Made by a program: the position numbers and the translations under genes. This document shows, in pieces, positions 15,919-30,815 of a stretch of DNA of 64,000 bases. The notes beneath the pieces are model-generated. The model made no database searches. It was not told where the DNA came from and saw only the letters and a program-made list of their open reading frames with translations. Each line of letters opens with the position of its first letter. Positions within the stretch are counted from its first letter, which is position 1. Origin of the DNA: Asterias rubens (taxonomy: Eukaryota). The DNA lies in NCBI RefSeq assembly GCF_902459465.1, contig NC_047062.1, forward strand, positions 4,154,001 through 4,218,000, read 5' to 3'.

Positions 15919-17253
15919 GGTTTATGCAAAGGTTTGAGTCTTGTAAAGAAAACACAAGTTATATCTCTTTGGATTCTGCAGAGATTCTATCTTCCAAAAT
16001 CATGTGGATCTGCTTAGAATACTGCAAAGAGAGTTATAATTACTGGCATTGAAGTGTGTCAACTTGGAACATGTAATGCACAAATAACATACATGTACTG
16101 GTATTAATATAACTATACAATGGCATATGCTCAAGCACCATCTAGAAAATATACCGCAATACGTCTTGGAAAAGCGAGTACAGTTTACAAATAAATCAAG
16201 CTTCTAATGTGGACACCATGGTGTATCATGTAACTATGACCGGCTTAATAATTGTGTACCACTTTTAAGTCTGAGCACCATGATAGTTGCTGAAGTTGTT
16301 TGGACTCTGATTTCACCCAGACTCATATATAAGGGCTATCGACAAGTTTCATAATATCCGATGAAACTTTTCAAAACATGGTGTTTTGTTTTAAAGATGT
16401 CAGCAATAAACTACTCTGCTTTCTCCCCCATCCCCATGATGTTCTTAAAGATATTGGCAAGGATATGATGGCCTGATACTTCCTGGAGGCAATTGAGGCA
16501 ATCCTTGGCAATGCCTTGGTGCCCTTGAAATGCTCTCGTAGAAATTTACAATTTCCTCACAGGGTGGTTTACCTTTTATATTCAGTCTAATGCCTAGGTG
16601 CTCTTACCCTTTCAAAACCGAAGCATACAGGCCTGAGATATTATTTGTGATTTTAATAACGCAGTTGCAGGCCTATTACTTCAGTCTTGGGAGTGCAGAG
16701 AAATGTTTCCCTTGCAAAGGTCAAGCCTATGAGAAAAATACAAACTTATACTAGATCAGTTGATAGGGACATCAACAATACATTATGTAGGGTCATAATA
16801 TAATGACTACATGTACATATAATATCCGGCCTGCAGTTGGCCTGTCCATTTGCTGCGATGTGTCTCGTTAATAAATGTGTTGTTGATTGAAACAGGTCCA
16901 AGATGATGCTTCTTGTATCTATCCCAGCATTATTTAAGACTCGGGATGATCTTGCAATAGTACTTTGGTCCCAGAGTGTATAGGCAGAACAGCGAATCTT
17001 GAATTTGTAAACAAAACTGACTTCTATCTGATGCCCGGTAGCATAATTCTTACTTATCTACCAGTCTAGTTGACCCTGATGGAGTCAAAGCCTTGATTCG
17101 AATCAAGGCTCTTTGACAATGGCCCGGCTGTGTAAAAGAGTTGTTAATGTTTAGTTCGGGCTGCCGGGGATAGTTTCGGTAAATTATTGAGAACGCTGTT
17201 GGTGTTATTCATAAAAGTTTTCAACCTCGTGGACTTGCAGAACAATCCATTAA

Positions 17254-17618
17254 GGGCAGTGGACACTATTGGTAATGACTCAAAATAATTGTTAGCATAA
17301 AAACTAACTTGATAGCTGTTGATAGTATAAAACATTGTGAGAAACGGCTCCCTCTGAAGTAACGTAGTTTTTGAGAAAGAAGTAATTTTCAACGAATTTG
17401 ATTTCGAGACCTCAGAATTAGATTTTGAGGTCCCGAAATCAAGCATCTGAACGCACACAACTTTGTGTTTACAAGGGTGTTTTTTCTTCCATTATTGTCT
17501 AGCAACTTCGACGACCAATTGAGTTCAAATGTTCACAGGTTTGTTATTTTGTGCATACGTTGATATACACCAATTGAGAGGACTGGTCTTCGACAATTAC
17601 CAATAGTGTCCAGTGTCT
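17254..17618 (+). mobile_element. Family A Kolobok-like MITE
   Basis: Same TIRs and internal sequence as 12277-12659. Confidence 0.8.
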
Positions 17619-18063
17619 CTAAAAAACGAAAAACTGAAAATTGACCGTAACATACAAGTTGTATGGTAATGTCTTTATAAAAAAAAGTGTTACCCGGCCA
17701 ATAAAAAGAATCACTGATTAGGCCTATGTAAAACATTACACTGGATATAATTTATTGGGTAAAGTCATGTTGACCAACGTTTGGACGATAGTAGTGACCC
17801 CATTGTTGGTATAAGTAATAAAATTAAAATAATAAGTTAATCCAACTCATTTGGGTTGAGTTGGTCAGTATTTTAAAATACCCGTTACTGGTTAATCTTA
17901 ACCTAACATTGGGTGACTGCAATACGCAACATTGAGACTTGTTTTTGACCTTTGTTTTGGTACTCTCAATCAAATATTGTGTGCCTGCAATAAGCCCAAA
18001 CCTGATGGTTAGAACTTTTGGTAATTTGAATGACCTTTTAACCACATCACGTGGTAAAACATA

Positions 18064-18583
18064 CAGTGGACACTATTGGTAACTACTCAAAAGAATTATT
18101 AGCATAAAACCTTACTTTGTAACGAGTAATGGGGAGAGGTTGATTGTATAAATCATTGTGAGAAAACGGCTCCCTCTAAACGTGACGTAGTTTTCGGGAA
18201 AGAAGTAATTTTCCACGAATTTGATTTCGAGACCTCAGATTTAGATTTTGAGGTCTTTAAATCAAGCATCTGAAAGCATACAACTTCGTGTGACAAGGGT
18301 GTATTTTTCTTTCATTATTATCTCTCAACTTTGACGACCAATTGAGCTAAATTTTTTACAGGTTTGTTATTTTAAGCATGTTGAGATACACCAAGTGAAA
18401 AGAGTGGTCTTTGACAATAGGAGACTTTCCAACGCTAGGCGGCAGCAGACATACCGGGTAAATTCCCATTGTTTACGTAGTTCTGAACATGCGCATAATT
18501 CTGAGAACAATGGATTTACCCGGTAAGTCTGCTGCCCTCTATCGTCCCAGAAAGTCTCCCATTGCCAATAGTGTCCAGTGTCT
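18064..18583 (+). mobile_element. Family A Kolobok-like MITE interrupted by a 142-bp MITE
   Basis: Family A body with a nested palindromic insertion at 18419-18560. Confidence 0.8.
18419..18560. mobile_element. 142-bp MITE with AT target duplication (ISL2EU-like)
   Basis: AT|(A/G)GGAGACTTT..AAAGTCTCCC|AT; a second copy of the same length at 19312. Confidence 0.8.
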
Positions 18584-19311
18584 TTAAGACCAACAGACGG
18601 TATATTTTTTTTTAAAGTCCTTAATAAATATTCAGACTTGTTTTTAACCAACAAATGAGCAGAAATACTTTGACCAACAAAATATTATGACCAATACTAC
18701 TGGCTAATTATGAGTAACAAATACATGGGAGTCACTATATTTTGCCCGATGTTGTGGTAAATGGCACTACCCAACTTCGCTGGGTAAAAAAAAACAATTC
18801 CGAAAGCAGTTGGATTGTTTCCCAGCGTCGGTCGAAATTGTTGTTCTTTCGATCGTTACCCATTAATTTTGTTTTAACAAAACGGTCATTTGCATTTTAA
18901 TAGATTTTGCGTAAATTAATTTATCTTGCATAATGCAAAACGATTAAGCTCCACCATCTGTGTTCAGTAAAAATAATTTTGCAGTGATTTAAAAAAAATA
19001 ATTTTAATTAATTTCTTCCATGGATTAGTGTTTTACAAAGATTTGAAAATTAAAAGTCTAAGACGGCTTTCTGTTATGTTTACATAAGATAGGTAACAAG
19101 ATTCCAAAATGGTGTGATGCAAAAATTAATGTTGTAGGCATTTCACACAATATTCATGGTGGGCGGTTGATGTTGTTGGATCGGTCTCAATTGTTCTGAT
19201 GAATTTTCAAGAGTCAGAAGTGAAGAGAGCTTCGAAAGACCTTGAAATAATTTTACCAATGTGTCTTCAAGAAAGGATGACTGATGACACTACACTCTAA
19301 ATGGGAGGAAT

Positions 19312-19453
19312 GGGAGACTTTTAGGACGCTTGGTGGCAGCAGACCTACCAGGTAAAATCCATTGCTCTCGATAATGTGCGCACGCTCAGAACCACGTAAA
19401 CAATGGACTTTTACTTGGTAAGTCTGCTTCCACCAAGCGCCTCAAAGTCTCCC
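19312..19453. mobile_element. 142-bp MITE with AT target duplication (ISL2EU-like)
   Basis: AT|GGGAGACTTT..AAAGTCTCCC|AT. Confidence 0.8.
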
Positions 19454-19799
19454 ATTCTAAAGTTAATTAGAATTAGAAAAATTATTGTGATTAGCGATCA
19501 ATACATTTTAAGTTTGAAATAAATCCTAAAGCATTTAGAATTCAACTCAAAAATTGTATTTTTAAATCTAAAGATGGATTGGTCCGTAACTACTGTCTCT
19601 CCCATTTAGATTGTTAACATCATTGGTGATTGGTGTATTTTTCGAGAAATAGGCAATGATTTGATAAATATTATGGACTATCCACAGACTCGATGACATT
19701 CGTTTGTCCTTTCCTTGACTGCCGAGGAAACTGTGAGGATGTCACTCAGAATGGGTGACCATGGCCGACCATCGCATCAAAATGATTCAAAGAGTTGTC

Positions 19800-19832
<33 letters not shown>

Positions 19833-21319
19833 AAAAAAAAAAAAATTAAAAAAATGAATGAATAACAACTGCCGAAATGATTTCACTTAATAATTTCAGT
19901 CACGTTATCTTGTAAAATGTAAATTGGAAGTAAAACTGTCATTTCTGCAAATGATTAAGTCTACGTTTAACTCCTTACCAAGTATAAGACACCGGTTGTT
20001 GTGTTGATCAAAGAAAAACAAAACTAAAAATAAAGTGTGATATTTGACCTGAATGCAAAACGTGTAAAAGCTTGGACTGCCGGTCTTGTTTAAAAGAAAG
20101 CATAATTTCACCATAGCTGACGGAGACAAACATTTGGCCATTTTAAGGATAAAACACCCTCTTTCAATCGACTTTTCCAATATGATGTACTTTCTCTTTT
20201 TCAAAGGTTATCGATCTATCAGTTTTCTGCGTACCTACCAACTTGTGGGGTTTAACCTTGTGAGTTGGTCGTACGTAACAGAATAAAAAAAGTAAAAAAA
20301 AATTCAAATTATTGGCTGTTATATCTTTAACAAATACTGAAACTTGGAATTGAGAAAAGGGTTTGACTTGAAGTTTGGAGCTGAGATGTTTCATAAACCG
20401 TTTATGAAGTATATTTCGCGTAATTTATTTCTGGTCAACTTGAAGTATTATGACATATGGCACAGGGTCAGTTTTTAAAGTTAACTTGCTACGTATCTAA
20501 AAACTACAATTGTGTGTTTAGAACCGTCGATCTTCTTTTGACATTGTTGACCACACCCAGGTCCACTCGCCCCCTTTTTTATTTTTAAGATTTGTATATC
20601 TTTTGTTTCTATATTTTTAAGATTTATATATCTTTTTTTCTATATACACCCTTTACAATGAAGAACAATTAGGTTTTAGAGGTTATAAACAATGGATTTT
20701 CTTTTCTTGAGCAAGCACTTTTCCTTGAGTGAAACAGAGGAGGAAAACTCACGTCCTCCCAATCGGGCGTGGTGGTCGGCTATCGAAAAAAAAGGTTGTC
20801 CGATAACAACACAGCCAACGATATTGGAGGGACGCAGGAAGGAGTGTTTTAAAATAATATTTAAAACAAAATGTGCACTTGTGATATTTTAATTGCCAAG
20901 TGAATTTTGAATGTTCTTGGGGAACCGCCTTTTTTTTTGGGGGGGGGGGGGCTCAAACAAATTTATTGGGTGGGGTCCAGGGGCCGGCCTAACGGCCCCT
21001 GGTGCCATGGGGTCCAGGGGGCGAAGCCCCGGTGGGGGTACAGGGGGAAAAGCCCCCTGGAGCTCTGAGCTTTCTGTCGTTTTGGGGGTGAAACATCAAG
21101 CCTCTTTATGCAGAAATTTAAAAAAACATACTTTTTAAGCACTTACTTTTGAAGCCCACCGAGCCCCCCCCCCCCCCCTGGGTGCTCCGTTGACTCGTAT
21201 GTTGTACCTTATAGCTCCATGGTTGCACAAACACGTTTCAAATCAAATATTCATCTAAATCGTTTTGTGATTCTCAAAATACTTGGCCTTATTGTTTTGT
21301 TCAATATCAAGTGAAATAG

Positions 21320-22060
21320 GTCGGTTACGCAATTTTAATATTCAGAATTGCGTAATAAAGTACTACGCGCTGAAATGCTATGACTTTCCAGAGATGGTTC
21401 ATTGTGAGTCAGAATTATTCTCGAACCTGGCAATGTTCAAACCATGCGACCGCGTCCATACTTCATGTGCATAATAAATATTGACGGGTCTTTGTGCATG
21501 ATATGTATGGGTCGGCCTTGTCCCCTCGGTCTCTGCGGTCGCTGTATTTCACATTGTTCTCAAAACCCGCGATATATATATATACACACTCAACGCTTTA
21601 CCATTACCTAATAGCTCAAGAATGGCCAATTAGATCACCCGATATTAACAACGAGGCTGTGTTTTTCATGTAACACCGATACCGATTGGCTAGGATCATT
21701 ATAAGACCCGCCTAACCGTGCTTATGGCTCTGGCCGTCAAGTTCAGGTTCAGGTCACATTTATAACGAAGGCTAGCTTGCTGCTGTGTGGATTGTGTGTA
21801 GACTGCTTTATATCATTATATGTACACACATACGTTATAAACGGCTGAATTGCACTTGTCGTTTGCTGGCACATGTTGGCGTAAATTCGAAATTAAAATG
21901 GTGGATAATTCATACAAGGGTTAGCATTTGGGATACCTGTATCGCACCGCCAACTTGCGGGGAGGAACACGGACTGGATACGGGCTAAAACACTCCTCCA
22001 AAAGGGTTCGTCGTTCGGTGTTTTTGTTTCGCCGTCGTTGTCGCACACAAGGACAAGGTT
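21320..22060 (+). promoter_or_regulatory. Probable promoter and first non-coding exon of the bZIP gene
   Basis: CCAAT boxes (~21625, ~21684), GC-box-like ACCCGCC (~21705), TATA-like TTTATAA (~21760) and CpG-rich sequence, followed by donor caag|gttagt at 22057/22058. HLF-type sites at 21324 and 21347. Confidence 0.55.
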
Positions 22061-25000
22061 AGTCTAGAGTCTTCATACATTAACCTAGATAGTTACGTAA
22101 GGGCGTGTCAACGTGAGATTTATTCTACCCCAAATGCCACCTTTTCGTCCCTTTTCGTTGGAAGATAGTAAGTTCAGTGTGTGCCCGTGTGTACAAGTTA
22201 ACCCCCTCTGCAAATCACAGCCGTGAAAAAAAGTTGAGAGATTACGTAATGTGTCGTAATCGTGGCAGTGTGAAGGTGCAGAAATGAAAAGTGTCTGGCC
22301 GGCCCCATACAATGTACGGAACTGATGACACTGCGTCAGTGAACCATTCGCAGATCAGCAGCAGAAATATCAATTCATGTTCGACTCTTTGACAACTTTG
22401 ATGACACTTGAATGACTGTCTCACTGTATATGTACCGACACGGTGTATTTTAGTACGGGGTTGTTTACAGTCATACATCCCCATGTATGTTTTTTTGTCA
22501 TCGTGGCGGTGCGTTCAAACTGAATATGGCTTTGTCTATCGTTGGTTTGCTTCGGCAGCATTACTTTCAGAGTGAAATGGCAAGGTAACGTGGTTGTTTT
22601 ATCTGAGCATAGGGAATGCTATTTATTTAGGATAGAAACATGGAGGACTAGCGGATGATGGTGGAAATACATTTATGGTAGGCCTACTCCTCCTAATCTA
22701 AGTAATCGGACTACAAAAACATTCACTTGACTTTTACATAGGACTTAGGAGGTATTTTTACTCGCCACTGAATATACTGGTCATGACCTGACGAAACAAA
22801 TCAATGAGTTGCTGTTTTTGTGTAGACATGGCATGGAGGTAGTCGGAAAGTTTCCGGGACAGAGCATTTTTTTATTAAACCACTGTTTACAGTTTAGTTT
22901 GGTGCTCATCGCGAAATTGTTTATGGAATGGGACATGAGTTCATTTTTATTATAGTAGGCCTACCTTGTGTAAAATCTTGAAAGGCATCGATGATCTTGG
23001 GATAAAGATGGAGCCATTCATCAGGTCTAGGACTAATCAGGTCCATTACCACTTGAAATAATACGATCATTACTTTAAATATTTGTATTAATAAATAAAT
23101 GAACAAAAACAAGCAAATTTGCCCCTATCAAATATGTTATAATTATTATTAAATGTTGTAATGTTATGTTTAAATATGACCATGGATATGAAAAATCAAT
23201 TTGTATGTGGATGCTATATATAAGGGGAACTATTTTGTTTCTCTTTGCTGTATAAAACCATGGATGACAGAAATGATGTGAACCATTCGGCCATTACAAT
23301 TTATTACACCCCACTCTAATTGCCCATTCTATTGCTAAACAGTGGTGTCAACCATAATAACAATCACACCATATCACACACCATGGTTGTATTATACCTC
23401 AATTTTCCAATCCATAAACTGAAATGTTTGTTAGTACCCGCCATTTGATTTGCTGATCGCCGAACAACCTCTGCGATTTTTGAAGAATAGAAGCGAACAA
23501 ATGTTTTTCCGTCTGAATGGTGCATTTTTTTCAGAACATAGTTTTATTTCTGTGTGTGGGCCTTCGATCATGCTCAGACCATAGTTTACCTCCATGTTGT
23601 GACCCTAAGATGGCCTTGCTTTACCCATGGAGGCTTCCTCCATGATGGAGGTTACCTATTATATGGTGTCAATTCATGCACTGTTGAGCAAAGTGTTCCA
23701 TCCTTGATGTGTGAGAAAAAAAGAGGGTTACATGTTACGTAACATTACATCGTATCAGACCATTATCGCACATGCGGCCGTCTTGCTCATAAACAAAATG
23801 TTACCTTTTTGAAGTGGCTTGTTTGTAATATGGGTGCTGGGTTTCATTTGTCATGTAAGACATCGTTACATCATCTCTTTTTGTGTGAATTGTATTTAGG
23901 TTTACTATAAGATCCTTGCTCTATACTTAGATGATGCTCTATGCATCTTTTCCTACCTCCATGCTCTATGGATGAATCAATCTAAATTCTGCCTGGGCCC
24001 AAGAAACTTGCATTCACCTTATTTATTATATAGCTAGTTGCAAGGTGTGTATTTGCATTATATATTTGCTTTGAGTCAAATCGTTTTTTTATATTCTCGG
24101 GCAGTAGTAAAACACTTTATTATTATAGGGAAAAACACAATCAAAATAACCAAATTATTCAAGAAAACCACAAAAAAATACAATCAAAGCAGAGAAGAAG
24201 AGGTAAGTGCACCAGCTGGAGCTCGATTGAGTACCGACGGGAAAAAAAGTCAGGTGCCATCCACCTCTCGCGTTGCTGCTTTTTTCAGGTTGGTCACACT
24301 GGAGAAATAAATAAATACTTAGGTGAAACTTTGGCATAACTATTTGGAATTGAAAGTGTAGGGCCGTGCAGATTTTTACATCAATTATGAAAGTAATGAT
24401 TTCATAATAAAAAAAACGATGACAACCCATCTCAAGGTGAATCTTATGTTTGTGAAATCGACAGTTATTTTTATATTGATGATTTTAAAAATCATGCCCA
24501 CACCGATACTTCTTACCTACAAGGTCTTATAGGCCTCCTAAAGACTAGTATTTGTCTGACCATGATGAAGGGTATTGTGCCACGTTCGATTGGCTGGAGG
24601 GCGTTTTTAACCCAACGAATGCGTTCTGCACGTTCCCACCACTGGGTGTTTTAATGGTACACAATGGAACAAGTTCATGAGCCAACTGTCGAAATTATGG
24701 AAAGAGAACTTCCAGACTGCACTGATAGTAATTTGAAGAGAAGATCGAACGGAAAAAAAAATTGAAAACATTTTTTGTGTACAGACTTTACTGCCTAATG
24801 AAACTGGAGAATTCCTATTACGCGTGCTATGCGCACAATAATGCATAGATATTGCACTGTTGACCCGAAGTGCTGACCGCTGTACCCTAATGCATATAAT
24901 GGTCACTGGTCAGATAACCTTTTGAACTTTAATTTTTACTGCCTATTTCCCAGCTGCTATTATATTCCCGACCCATAAACAAAAACCACTGTATGTTGAC

Positions 25001-26043
25001 CGTCAGCTTTGGCCACTCAGCCCTTCGGCCCTGACCGTTACGTTTGACCTGCCTGACCATTAAAGTGACGTCAGTTGGTGAAATGGGGGTCAAGTATCGG
25101 TGAAGTCATGCAATATTGTAGCATAGGGGTTTTGTGTAAATTTACACAAATTAATTTAAACAGTTTTGGGAATTGTGAACAGGCTCCTTAAATCAGTTGT
25201 CCTTGCCGTATAATTAATTTGGTTTAATGTTTTATGCAAGTGTATAGGGTGTTTTGTACGTTTACACCAACTATTTTTGCTTGTACAGTTTGAGAAGGCC
25301 TCTTATTAACTGTCCATGCTGGGAACATGTTTTGTAGTAGGTTTTATTCAAGTGTGAGTGTTTTTTTAACGTTTACTACACAACCACAGTTTTGGAATTA
25401 TGAAAAGGTCTCATTATGAAAAGGTCTCTTGTAAATATAGTTTGTTTTTCATGTTTTATGCGTAAGGGTTTTGACAAATTAATTTTATGCAGTTTTTGAA
25501 TTATGAAAAAGGCATCTTATCATTTTTTCCTAGACATGGAATATTATACTTCTTTATGTTTGCTGATGCTCAGTCAACAGCAAAATAAAACGACAACATG
25601 TTTGGGTTTTTTTTAAAGATGAAACCGCGTGTTTTACACGGAACGTAAGCACGAGGGGAAAAGTTCAAAGCATGCAGATCTCTAATTCAATTTCACTAGG
25701 TCTATAAATCACAGATCTTGAATGTACAGTACGTGCACAACGAACCGAATAGGTGTTATCAGCAGTGATGTCAATTATAATATCACTGTTAAAACAAAAG
25801 TTAATGGCCTGACGTTTCAACCCTTGCAGAGTCGATCTTTTTAGCCTTCGAGAAAGACTCTGACGTCAAGCCATTATCTATTTTTCAATGATACATCATA
25901 TTTTCTCGATTTGTTTAACAGACAATTTGAAAATCTATATATTCAAGTTGTTTGAAATACATGAAATAATGTACACGGGTATTTCCCAAAATACATAAAG
26001 CGTTTCGTGACTGAGCGCTGGAGGTCACCGGACCTAAGCTCTG

Positions 26044-26280
26044 GGCCCAATGTCATAGAGCTGCTAAGCACAAACATTTGCTCAGCATGAAATTTCATCC
26101 TTGATAAAAACAGGATTACCCACAAAATTTCCATTTGTTTCGTGTTGCTTGTTACTATTCAGCTGTTGTTTGCTTATCCTGAAAATAACGTGGAAATATA
26201 GTTGGTAATCCTTTGTTTATCAAGGGAGAAATTACATGGTAAGCAAATTGTTTTGCTTAGCAGCGCTATGAAATTGGGCC
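26044..26280. mobile_element. Palindromic MITE with CTG target-site duplication
   Basis: CTG|GGCCCAA..TTGGGCC|CTG. Confidence 0.85.
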
Positions 26281-26583
26281 CTGGTGTTGTCAGAAGCAGA
26301 GTGTGGGTTCGAAGCCCGGACACTTGAAGTAGAACCCATGAGCAAGGCATTTAACCACAATAGTAAAACGGACTGTGAAGGGGGTAACCCCATTAAAGCA
26401 GGAGTTGGTGGCAACGTGCCTCTGGTTGCAGTTGATTTGGGTCAATATCAAATAAATGATAGCCCTCTCATTAAAGTGGCCGTCCGGCCTCGTAGTTTTA
26501 TGGCGAAACAAAAAAGTTTCCTATAAGTTTTAAAAATAAATGTGTTCTGTGTTATTAATTTTCTCAGGTGGCACCTAGTCGCC

Positions 26584-27609
26584 ATGTCGTCCCCTGACAA
26601 TGGAAATACGGACGGGAAGACACCCGGCAGGTTTAAGTCTGAACCCGATCCAGATATGCCGATAGAGGGCGACGACGAAGCTTCCGAACTTTTGATTAAC
26701 ATCAAAGAGGAGCCGATGGACGAGGATTATTATCAGACCTATTCAAATACCAACGGAGACACGTGTCCAAGCGACTCGGCCGAAAGTGCCGAGTTGGATG
26801 ATGACGTAGAGTCAAATAACTTCGATAAAATTCGTGAGACCAACGAAAACGTAATGCAACAAACCGTAGTTACCAAGATGGCGATTGCTCCAGTTACCAC
26901 AGTGCCAAACGGTGGAGGGTTGAGGTCTAATATCAAGACGACCAAAATACTACCGAAACCCATGAAGTTTGCCGGGATGACCACAAAACAGGTTGTTGCT
27001 TCGACACGCTTGCTGCCTGTCGGCCTTAAAACATCGTGCCCCATCCCGATCGCTCTGACGGTCAACACGCCCGAGGTGGACCCGAAAGCGAAAGCTGCTC
27101 TGACCACCAGCCAAACCTCGGCCCACCATCTCATGACTCTTGCCACAGAGGCAGATAAAATATTGAAAAGGCAAAAGAAGACGAGTGAGAAGGGTTCTAA
27201 TTCCGATCACACCGACGATGACAAGTTGAGTTACAGTGAGGAGGAGGACGGGATGTGCACCTCAGACTCCAGTAACGGACTCGACCCTTTTGCGAACGGC
27301 TCCGATCAGACTTTGACCCTGATTCAAAGGCGAGCTGCCGAAGCATCTTTGTCAGCATCCAAGTCCAAGAAAACCAAGAGAAAACGGAACCAGTTACCAG
27401 ACGACTTGAAAGATCAGACGTACTGGGAGAGACGGCGGAAGAACAACGAGGCCGCAAAGAGGTCCCGTGATGCCCGCCGTGCCAAAGAGGATCAGATCGC
27501 GATTCGGGCTGCATTGCTGGAGCAAGAAAATATGAGACTCAAGATTGAGGTAGCAGCCCTCAAGGAAGAAACAATAAAACTGAGGGGAATGCTTTACGAT
27601 AAGCGATGA
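26584..27609 (+). CDS. PAR/giant-like bZIP transcription factor (HLF/TEF/giant/CES-2 family); main coding exon
   Basis: Acceptor ttctcag at 26567. Basic region and zipper [59 protein letters not shown]; the EDQIAIRAA motif resembles giant and HLF. An upstream ATGGCAAG|gtaacg (22577-22584) would splice in frame to give [13 protein letters not shown]. Confidence 0.9.
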
Positions 27610-28905: not shown

Positions 28906-30815
28906 ATTGATTGATTTAAATAAAAAGTTAAAATGTTTCTTTTTACTTTTTCTTTAAGTTAGGACACCCTCGGTGAGCACTAAAAGTAGCTAAGAACCGA
29001 CAGAAAAATCTTACTTAGCAAAAAACAGGAAACCAGTCAAAGACCCATAAGTAGAAATCGATACAACTGGTGCCCCTCTCATTGTTTTGCTTAAATAGCA
29101 AAGGAAAATTGGTTAGCCACCACCGTGTTATTTTTAAGATGGCGTTGTGATGACGTCAGTGTAACAGTGCATTGATCTCCATTAGATGTACTAAATCAAT
29201 GTTAAGGGTGTATGACCGTCAAGTTGGGTATGTATGAACTTACGCGGGTAGGTGTAACCGCGGGATTTAGGATAATTTTACAACCAACAAAATATACATG
29301 TCTTTGTTAATAATACAGCGGTATGGTTTACTGCAAGTCTGACCTCGATCTCTACAGCTGTTTACCTTGCATAATGCATTTTGTGAAGATGACTACCACT
29401 AACATTACCTCATTGTACAAACAACTTCATATACAGGCCTATTGTTTGATTTACAATAATTATAAGAAATACAAATCTTGATGTACGTGGCAATTTAACT
29501 TCTCAGTGAATCGATGCTATAGTTGTTACATACTTATACAAAGCAATGGTATAAATCAAGCCATGGGTAGTTGAGTGTCATTGACGATTGCTGTGTATCA
29601 ACATCCATAATATCAAAACTTGGTGTACAGTTGGCTTTTCCGTTTGTCATCAGAGCAGCGGCCATTCAACACACGAGGCCAACATGTCGCAAATTTTCTG
29701 CGAGAGTTGGAAGACATTTATTTCGTTTGCAAAATATGAACTGGCTTTCATCTTTTAAGTTTACTTTTCAAGGCGAAATTTCAGATGCAAACAGTCTTGC
29801 ATTCGTACAAAGTTCAAAATCACTTCTAATCGAGGAGTCGAAATCGGGGAGCCATCAGTTCGCGCGAGAGCAGTGATCTCGCGAGAGCACTATCTCAGCG
29901 CGTGGGCCGATTTAACGACTTGTCCACAAGTCTAGCGTGTGCATGGTAAATATTATAAGTAGACAAGGAATTTGAATTTTTGTTTTATAAAAAGCTTGGT
30001 TCGATGTTTTCAAACTATGTTTTTACCCAATCGTTTATTCGAAACTTACATCAGTTAATTTAATCTTGCCTTTTGTCAAGGTACATGAAGGTTGGTGTAA
30101 TAAAAACTTGAGATGTGGTGACTAACTTTGCTTTGGCCATTAAGGGAGGGATGCTTCTATACTATTAGTTTTGTTATTACCACAGACAACTTTTAACCAA
30201 ACCAAGTGGTTAAACAATGATGAGGTCGTTCTCGATTAAATTTCCTGTAATAAATTTAATGAATTGTTTTTAACTCGCAATGGATTTCGAAACATCACAG
30301 TTTCATGAAATTATATTTATCGGTTTTTTTCAGCGGTGGAAGACGGTTATGTCCATATACAATATGAACTTGGTCGTGTAACTAAAAAAAAAATATAGCT
30401 GCATGTAAATAACAGCAAGTATAAAATAAAATGCTTTAAAAATACCGGTTTCTGGTTTTCTCTGTTTCTGTTGTACCATGATTATCCGATTCCGATTACA
30501 TAACACAGCCATGCATTGGGTCATTTGGAAATGATAGGAATATGTGAGGGAGTACACATGGTGAAGGATCTGTAATAAACACCTCAGGCCAGTACAAGTC
30601 CAATTTTTTCGAGTTTATTTTATTTCAAAGGGTGACCAAAAAAATCTTAAAAAGTGGGAAGGATACCATGCCGCATCATGCCTGCCTGCTAACATAAGGA
30701 ATATCCCGAATCATGTTGGTTTGGTTTAAGTGATTTAGATTGCTTTCGGAAATAATTCCTTTCAAAGTTTTCCCCGAACCAAAATGTTGACAACATAGGG
30801 ACACCGCCAACATAT

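Follow-up and report, generated by a model that had tools for sequence, protein, structure and literature searches.

A conserved cluster of D-box sites in the promoter and first intron of a giant-type bZIP gene of sea stars: a candidate autoregulatory module

Introduction

Does a bZIP transcription factor gene in a sea star, Asterias rubens, carry binding sites for its own protein family in its own control region, and could it thereby regulate itself? The question is raised by a stretch of 64,000 nucleotides of contig NC_047062.1 (positions 4,154,001 to 4,218,000, forward strand; hereafter the window, whose own numbering is used throughout). A first-pass annotation made from the letters alone had noticed a cluster of D-box sites, the RTTAYGYAAY elements bound by PAR-superfamily bZIP proteins, around the presumed promoter of a gene encoding a bZIP protein of this class. 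It proposed an autoregulatory loop, and it named local enrichment over background and conservation in other echinoderms as ways to check the proposal. D-box feedback is central to circadian output in vertebrates and to light responses in fish. Here we report that the sites very probably form a functional and very old D-box control region of the bZIP gene, as judged from comparison of orthologous loci.

D-box sites in the window

The window holds three copies of the palindrome TTACGTAA (22093, 22242 and 23735), which lie within less than 1.65 kb, and no further copy, as the first-pass annotation had noted. We refer to the three occurrences as sites A, B and C. A search for RTTAYGYAAY adds two sites farther upstream, and each string that the annotation had listed was found at its given place.

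22087 to 22112, unstranded: site A, D-box GTTACGTAAG (22092 to 22101) with conserved 3' extension GGGCGTGTCAAC, forming a 26-nt block; found as GTTACGTAA at 22092 by string search of the window.
22240 to 22260, unstranded: site B, perfect D-box ATTACGTAAT (22241 to 22250) with a GTAAT half-site, forming a 21-nt block; found at 22241 by string search of the window.
23731 to 23750, unstranded: site C, GTTACGTAAC (23734 to 23743) in the 14-bp palindrome ATGTTACGTAACAT, which string search of the window places at 23732; a conserved island deep in intron 1.
21324 to 21356, unstranded: upstream pair, GTTACGCAAT (21324 to 21333) and ATTGCGTAAT (21347 to 21356), about 450 bp 5' of the start site.

Sites B and C satisfy the D-box rule RTTAYGTAAY at 10 of 10 positions and site A at 9 of 10, with a G at its 3' end. 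The count of TTACGTAA is weak on its own: three copies compare with about one expected, and 7 of 100 shuffles of the 64-kb window also reach three. This marginal count is what speaks for the view that AT-rich CpG palindromes have come together in a promoter by chance. Against that view stand the clustering statistics and a CpG control. The probability of finding all three copies within 1643 bp is about 0.002, and five of the eight CpG-type D-box octamers fall within 2.4 kb (P about 4e-4). Of 71 WWWCGWWW octamers in the window only five lie in the 21.3 to 23.8 kb region, and three of those are TTACGTAA; together with a CpG observed/expected ratio of 0.87 versus 0.72, this ruled out a CpG-island artefact. 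Local enrichment, the first of the proposed checks, thus favours a real cluster. An origin from repeats or transposons was also rejected, the D-boxes not being repeat copies.

TTACGTAA is also enriched in six of seven other echinoderm loci, with 4 to 8 copies observed and 0.3 to 0.5 expected from dinucleotide shuffles. The seventh, that of the crinoid Antedon, contains TTACGTAA without enrichment over shuffles, its few sites being nevertheless clustered at the promoter. No conserved CACGTG E-box was found beside the D-boxes, and a CACGTT adjoining site A is confined to Asterias.

Gene structure and transcripts

The position of the sites relative to the gene follows from RNA contigs of four runs, covering two species and four studies, and from comparison with the gene model of A. 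amurensis.

21800 to 22057, plus strand: exon 1 (5' untranslated region), from RNA contigs of the four runs.
22526 to 22584, plus strand: alternative first coding exon 1b, beginning MALSIVGLLRQHYFQSEMA, from its match to the N-terminus of A. amurensis model P0001.
26568 to 27609, plus strand: exon 2 to the stop codon, the exon running on into the 3' untranslated region, from the RNA acceptor and the sequence.

The contigs begin at 21800, 21820, 21820 and 21886, and the true start site probably lies slightly 5' of 21800. A splice joining 22057 to 26568 is present in the contigs of all four runs and removes an intron 1 of 4510 nt with GT..AG ends. A start near 21.8 kb followed by a first intron had been guessed in the first-pass annotation, and both are borne out. 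Because the contigs place exon 1 and the splice, the sites can be said to flank the start site and to lie in intron 1, with A, B and C inside the intron and the 21324/21347 pair upstream, much as the annotation had described them. The coding sequence (26584 to 27609, ATG at 26584) is a single exon encoding 341 amino acids; the basic region lies at 27.4 kb on the plus strand, within a bZIP at 27409 to 27570.

Exon 1b, a predicted exon of A. amurensis, Patiria and Acanthaster alike, joins acceptor 26568 in the same way as exon 1. It adds 20 residues (MALSIVGLLRQHYFQSEMAR), with the first base of exon 2 completing the last codon. Its ATG context ATGGCTTTGT also stands at the coding-sequence starts of Patiria and Acanthaster. 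It was not seen in the RNA contigs of the four runs. Sites A and B lie 280 to 430 bp 5' of its ATG and would sit in its promoter, if exon 1b has a start site of its own. Farther along the intron, at 25700 to 26400, RNA-contig word depth reaches 1e4 to 1e5 in four of four runs with many rearranged joints; this segment is a multi-copy transcribed repeat outside the bZIP transcript.

Conservation of the sites

Orthologous loci were compared from the sea stars A. amurensis (L001), Patiria miniata (L003) and Acanthaster planci (L004), the sea urchins Lytechinus pictus (L002), L. variegatus (L005) and Diadema setosum (L006), the crinoid Antedon mediterranea (L007) and the hemichordates Ptychodera flava (L008) and Glandiceps talaboti (L010). 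For sea urchins the promoter comparison is that with L. pictus, the promoters of Diadema and L. variegatus lying beyond the 10-kb flank.

All three TTACGTAA sites are present with their flanks in four of four sea stars. In an unbiased exact-word scan of 10.5 kb of non-coding sequence (16000 to 26560) against both valvatids, Patiria and Acanthaster, four blocks of at least 12 nt were common to all three: a nuclear-receptor repeat (24 nt), the exon-1 donor AGGACAAGGTTAGTC (15 nt), site A (26 nt) and site B (21 nt). Lowering the word length to 11 nt adds site C and the block CCATTACCTAA, which makes six collinear blocks in total, namely A, B, C, a D-box-like composite, the nuclear-receptor repeat and the exon-1 donor. 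The DNA around A, B and C can barely be aligned between Asterias and Patiria or Acanthaster, and these islands of identity have the appearance of a classic phylogenetic footprint.

Each of the three sites has its own conserved layout. The D-box of site A lies 35 nt into intron 1. Its 26-nt block has the same letters in the window, in Patiria and in Acanthaster, and GTTACGTAAGGGYGTGTCRA from it is also found in L. pictus and Antedon. The 21-nt block of site B is identical in the window and both valvatids, and its second half-site, GTAAT at 22256 to 22260, is offset by exactly 10 bp. This tandem layout is kept as GTTACGTAAC plus ATTGTGTAAT in the urchin and as TTTGCGTAAT plus ATTATGTAAC in the crinoid: site B always consists of a D-box with a second site or half-site 10 bp on, and the distance from A to B is 142 to 179 bp. 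Site C has an ATTAC half-site at the same 10-bp offset. Its core is a collinear 11-mer in the window, Patiria and Acanthaster, and CATGTTACGTAAyrTTACAT is the sole island of conservation when about 340 bases of Asterias and the valvatids are aligned.

The second check proposed in the first-pass annotation therefore has a clear outcome: A, B and C are kept across asteroid orders (four sea stars), and A and B across three echinoderm classes, with one urchin and one crinoid added. Exact conservation over 21 to 26 nt at this depth refutes a chance cluster, to which we assign a negligible probability.

Conservation in an intron might also reflect a role in the RNA, such as an intronic splicing enhancer near the donor or an alternative 5' exon. 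Site A is well placed for this, 35 nt past the donor and followed by a GGG run, and in one run a low-depth contig covers 22072 to 22431. Sites B and C, on the other hand, are far from splice sites, and the conserved cores are DNA palindromes. No Rfam match was obtained and RNA structure was not in excess (z=+0.75). Contigs like the low-depth one are also spread along the intron, a pattern that pre-mRNA would give. We regard an RNA-level explanation as very improbable, and return to the sites as elements of a DNA control region.

Promoter elements

Between the upstream pair and exon 1, cross-taxon alignment revealed three further elements.

21603 to 21630, plus strand: composite of a D-box-like 10-mer (ATTACCTAAT), 13 nt and CCAAT, at about -190.
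21682 to 21691, plus strand: inverted CCAAT box (CCGATTGGCT), with ATTGG invariant in seven of seven aligned taxa.
21740 to 21756, plus strand: nuclear-receptor direct repeat AGTTCA-N5-AGGTCA, with the geometry of a direct repeat spaced by 5 nt (DR5), about 40 bp 5' of the contig ends.

The upstream pair consists of PAR/C-EBP hybrid D-box-like sites of the TTACGCAA type. It is identical in A. amurensis and aligns with ATTGCGCAAT and ATTGCGTAAC in Patiria; in Acanthaster only a decayed TATTGCATAAC is left. The composite is invariant in the window, A. amurensis and Patiria and reads ATTACCTAAC in Acanthaster. It reaches beyond the sea stars, since their CCATTACCTAAT-N13-CCAAT lines up with the urchin's ATTACGCAAT-N13-CCAAT and with GTTACGCAAT-N13-CCAAT of the crinoid, and the counterpart in Glandiceps is GTTACGCAAT-N12-CCAAT. 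In urchin, crinoid and Glandiceps the 10-mer follows RTTACGCAAT, the central CG having been lost in sea stars. The inverted CCAAT box reads GATTGG in six of seven aligned taxa and CATTGG in Ptychodera.

The order of the elements is the composite, then the inverted CCAAT box (GATTGGC), then the nuclear-receptor repeat just 5' of the transcript, and this promoter grammar of 10-mer, CCAAT, inverted CCAAT and repeat can be traced to the two hemichordates. From published divergence estimates, its age would be roughly half a billion years.

The nuclear-receptor repeat is the only match to RGKTCA-N5-RGKTCA in the 64 kb. It is found at the same place in the four sea stars, L. pictus and Antedon, representing three echinoderm classes (L002:1080, L007:8385, L003:9244, L004:9228), and lies inside the 24-nt block exactly common to Patiria and Acanthaster. 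The hemichordates have GGTTCA-N4/5-AGGTC[A/G] at this position, which is DR4- or DR5-like. The repeat suggests a direct nuclear-receptor input, possibly retinoid, to the bZIP gene.

The encoded protein and the readers of the sites

The 341-residue protein has a Pfam bZIP_2 domain near its C-terminus (E=1.8e-14). Its nearest relative is the A. amurensis model (97% identity), and orthologues in Patiria, Acanthaster, sea urchins, crinoids and hemichordates bear the automatic names 'giant-like', 'TEF-like' and 'DBP-like'. The closest solved structures are those of the NFIL3 bZIP, free and DNA-bound (8k86, 8k8a, 8k89; E about 1e-12). In the complex of NFIL3 with TTACGTAA, base contacts are made by R80, N83, A86, A87, S90 and R91 (PMC10941009). 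All six residues are identical in the sea-star protein, and its basic region, beginning YWE[KR], differs from that of NFIL3 at the bracketed position only. The zipper resembles that of VBP/TEF, with three attractive g-e' pairs (E-K, E-K, E-R) and an Asn at a1, the first 'a' position. Under established rules of bZIP dimerisation, such g-e' pairs and Asn favour homodimers, and the zipper is predicted to homodimerise. By the same kind of sequence rules, the product is predicted to be able to read TTACGTAA and to dimerise.

The first-pass annotation had assigned the basic region to the PAR-bZIP/E4BP4/giant class. The DNA-binding class was right, and the protein has the extended basic region KDxxYWxRRxKNNxAAKRSR typical of PAR proteins; the label PAR-bZIP proved too specific. 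A composition check, made without alignment to a PAR-domain profile, found only two prolines among the 70 residues that precede the basic region and hence no Pro- and acid-rich PAR domain there. Because this domain is missing, the protein is giant-type rather than PAR proper. It has the C-terminal bZIP of giant proteins and a hinge, KED[EQ]IAIRAA, that matches Drosophila Gt, Capitella 178189 and Lottia 100015 (Table S1, PMC4736632). By signature and composition, not by tree, it is a giant-type bZIP of the PAR superfamily. The nearest Strongylocentrotus purpuratus bZIPs in the same table differ from the sea-star protein. Membership of the PAR-L subfamily was considered and rejected, PAR-L basic regions being quite different (PMC4736632). 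Outside the bZIP, residues 180 to 190 (window 27121 to 27153) form a motif that is invariant in all aligned echinoderm orthologues, from sea stars, urchins and crinoids.

Which proteins read the module is a separate question. C/EBP-family proteins could do so instead of PAR-class ones: C/EBP-beta binds TTACGTAA with a dissociation constant of about 0.018 uM, tighter than NFIL3 (PMC10941009), the upstream sites are PAR/C-EBP hybrids (TTACGCAA, TTGCGTAA), and a perfect TTGCGCAA stands beside D-boxes in Patiria and in a 3' module of urchins. The three best-conserved sites, however, keep TTACGTAA and not TTGCGCAA over the whole sampled span, and their flanks fit RTTAYGTAAY. PAR-class readers are indicated because A/T is selectively held at the positions that separate PAR from C/EBP recognition. 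We thus consider it probable that the module is read by PAR-superfamily bZIPs, and improbable that its readers are of the C/EBP family.

A possible feedback loop

Sites of the protein's own class lie in the gene's own control region, as an autoregulatory loop demands. In the mechanism that we propose, sites A, B and C, the decayed composite at about -190 and the pair at about -450 would serve as docking sites for dimers of PAR/NFIL3/giant-class bZIPs. B and C would act as 'one-and-a-half' sites, in which the 10-bp offset, one helical turn, may let two dimers sit on one face of the double helix. Binding of the gene's own product would then feed back on its transcription, and paralogues, an HLF/PDP1-type activator and an NFIL3/VRI-type repressor, may compete or cooperate with it. 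Self-binding is the simplest reading because the contact residues match and the zipper is predicted to homodimerise. We give a somewhat better than even chance to the gene's own product being one of the readers, which makes self-regulation plausible. In the autoregulatory proposal of the first-pass annotation, the cis-elements are thus strongly supported by their conservation, whereas the loop itself is something that we infer.

The sign of the feedback can be argued both ways. The N-terminus is very acidic (net charge -18 over 115 residues), which hints at activation. Drosophila Giant is a repressor. NFIL3 binds and represses its own promoter (PMC4629104), and analogy with these two proteins hints at repression.

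Alternatively, the gene may receive D-box input without being bound by its own product, as a target of other D-box factors (HLF/PDP1-type activators against an NFIL3/VRI-type repressor), and would then be an output gene of the clock or of light. Paralogue input alone would fit equally well, because echinoderms have further D-box binders, with PAR-family proteins and NFIL3 in S. purpuratus and PDP1/VRI candidates in A. rubens. Sp-Hlf, which may or may not correspond to this gene, is reported to cycle in light-dark but not in constant darkness, and Sp-Nfil3 is expressed in larvae (PMC10486798). In vertebrates the majority of D-box genes are such targets (PMC6687812; PMC3516543). Yet the gene's own product shares its contact residues with a proven TTACGTAA binder and has a zipper predicted to homodimerise; it is present wherever the gene is on, and excluding it from the sites would need a special mechanism. 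Input without self-binding is a tentative alternative that we hold to be possible but rather unlikely.

Several observations weigh against a D-box module read by the gene's own product. The 3' flank of site A is suboptimal (G, not Y), its long conserved extension suggests a second partner, and the ancestral promoter D-box lacks its core CG in sea stars. Competing readers are at hand: besides NFIL3 and a PAR-L, S. purpuratus encodes three further PAR-family bZIPs; in A. rubens there are candidates of the PDP1 type and of the VRI type, the latter carrying two bZIP domains (PMC9939569); and the in vitro binding of C/EBP-beta to TTACGTAA is tight (PMC10941009). Finally, the orthologue locus of the mollusc Mya arenaria showed neither TTACGTAA enrichment nor the promoter grammar, which also rules out conservation across bilaterians.

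A bolder idea is that the Ambulacraria grammar, which would rank among the oldest fixed ones seen in that group, and the helically phased tandem D-boxes, placed in intron 1 in echinoderms and in the 3' flank in urchins and hemichordates, are parts of an ancestral, self-sustaining switch of a giant/PAR bZIP. We regard this as speculative and doubtful. If true, the switch would join a nuclear-receptor signal, possibly retinoid, to light or clock input arriving through D-box paralogues, and the D-box loop of vertebrates would have had a forerunner in it among early deuterostomes.

Flanking regions

Farther from the start site, two more features had been counted as part of the cluster.

18907 to 18933, unstranded: TTGCGTAA (18907) and TTGCATAA (18926), present in the A. 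amurensis locus (91% identical) only.
20271 to 20279, unstranded: near-match GTACGTAAC, discounted, within 19855 to 21148.

The sites at 18907 and 18926 have no counterparts in the valvatid loci by motif listing, blastn or shared k-mer scan, and they are probably outside the module. The segment 19855 to 21148 gave no alignment of at least 300 bp to A. amurensis. None of the three far-upstream sites (18907, 18926 and 20271) was recovered in the valvatid loci. Opposite this 1.3-kb segment, A. amurensis has about 4.2 kb of tandem units of about 1 kb (L001:4473-8637), each with several TGACGTCA palindromes of the cyclic AMP response element (CRE) type, 13 in all. Because 4.2 kb of tandem units in A. 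amurensis face 1.3 kb in the window, the region upstream of about -650 must be unstable even between congeners.

Downstream, the urchins have a 3' module 2 to 3 kb past the stop codon (L002:13339-13478, L005:13347-13488, L006:14240-14384). Its order of TTACATAA, TTGCGCAA/TTAYGYAA with a 10-bp offset, and TTACGTAA is kept between Lytechinus and Diadema. Both hemichordates carry tandem D-boxes with a 10-bp offset about 0.5 kb after the stop codon. More TTACGTAA clusters lie at 18 to 20 kb of the Lytechinus loci. No conserved 3' D-box module was found in sea stars, which share only a Pumilio-like block: TAGCTGCATGTAAATA (30396 to 30411), the sole 3'-flank block of at least 12 nt that the window shares with Patiria and Acanthaster, includes the Pumilio-type UGUAAAUA. 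This suggests a long 3' untranslated region with post-transcriptional control.

Gene order is kept, as judged from the upstream flanks of L001, L003, L004 and L007 and from the window at about 33 kb. Three sea stars and the crinoid have a gene of the ribosomal S12/S23 family upstream, and A. amurensis has an FHA-RING (RNF8-like) gene downstream, on the opposite strand. No neighbour was called within 10 kb for urchins and hemichordates, yet the D-box modules stay with the bZIP gene.

Discussion

Nucleotide-level conservation of regulatory DNA among sea stars, sea urchins and crinoids is uncommon. In the present locus, what is conserved is a fixed succession of recognisable binding sites, and this opens the regulatory logic to direct reading and testing. 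With three to five short sites, it offers a compact test of whether D-box feedback among PAR-superfamily bZIPs is older than vertebrates. It is also a way into the question of how signals from light or the clock, and possibly from nuclear receptors, reach the gene networks of echinoderms, and the tandem D-box with its 10-bp offset is a syntax that can be searched genome-wide to define a regulon. In the searchable literature we found no prior description of TTACGTAA together with giant or bZIP, or with urchin.

The closest known system is the autoregulation of mammalian NFIL3/E4BP4, which likewise involves a bZIP of the TTACGTAA class, sites in the gene's own region and the same base-contact residues (PMC10941009; PMC4629104). 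The sea-star gene differs in that its bZIP lies at the extreme C-terminus and has a PAR-like hinge and zipper, and in that its sites are predicted and lie mainly in intron 1. In vertebrates, D-boxes of DBP/TEF/HLF and E4BP4 and the light-responsive D-box enhancers of zebrafish resemble the present cluster in having RTTAYGTAAY elements clustered near start sites. Activator and repressor paralogues compete for them (PMC6687812, PMC3516543, PMC6123470). In contrast to those circuits, the sea-star locus lacks a conserved E-box partner, the target gene itself belongs to the binding family, and its sites are fixed across echinoderm classes.

In Drosophila, vrille and Pdp1 provide a PAR-superfamily repressor and activator that act on V/P boxes of Clock (Cyran et al., 2003, as cited in PMC7222589). 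According to that account, the loop is an interlocked one built on D-box-like sites and resembles our proposal in this respect, its target being Clock and not the bZIP gene itself. The nuclear-receptor repeat can be compared with DR5 elements of the retinoic-acid type, with which it shares two RGKTCA half-sites in direct repeat, a 5-nt spacer and a position beside the start site; it differs in the conserved GTT in the middle of its spacer and in the DR4- or DR5-like spacing in hemichordates.

We know of no D-box autoregulatory module in Drosophila gt. The sea-star protein shares with Giant a C-terminal bZIP, the lack of a PAR domain and a giant-type hinge, which in Gt reads KEDEIAIRAA (Table S1, PMC4736632), and 'protein giant-like' is the NCBI name of both the A. 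planci and the L. pictus orthologue. Its bZIP is about 57% identical to that of Gt and about 82% to Capitella 178189, as counted by hand and without a tree. A transcription factor gene with sites for its own family is thus of a known kind; what is unusual at this locus is the depth of conservation and the readable syntax.

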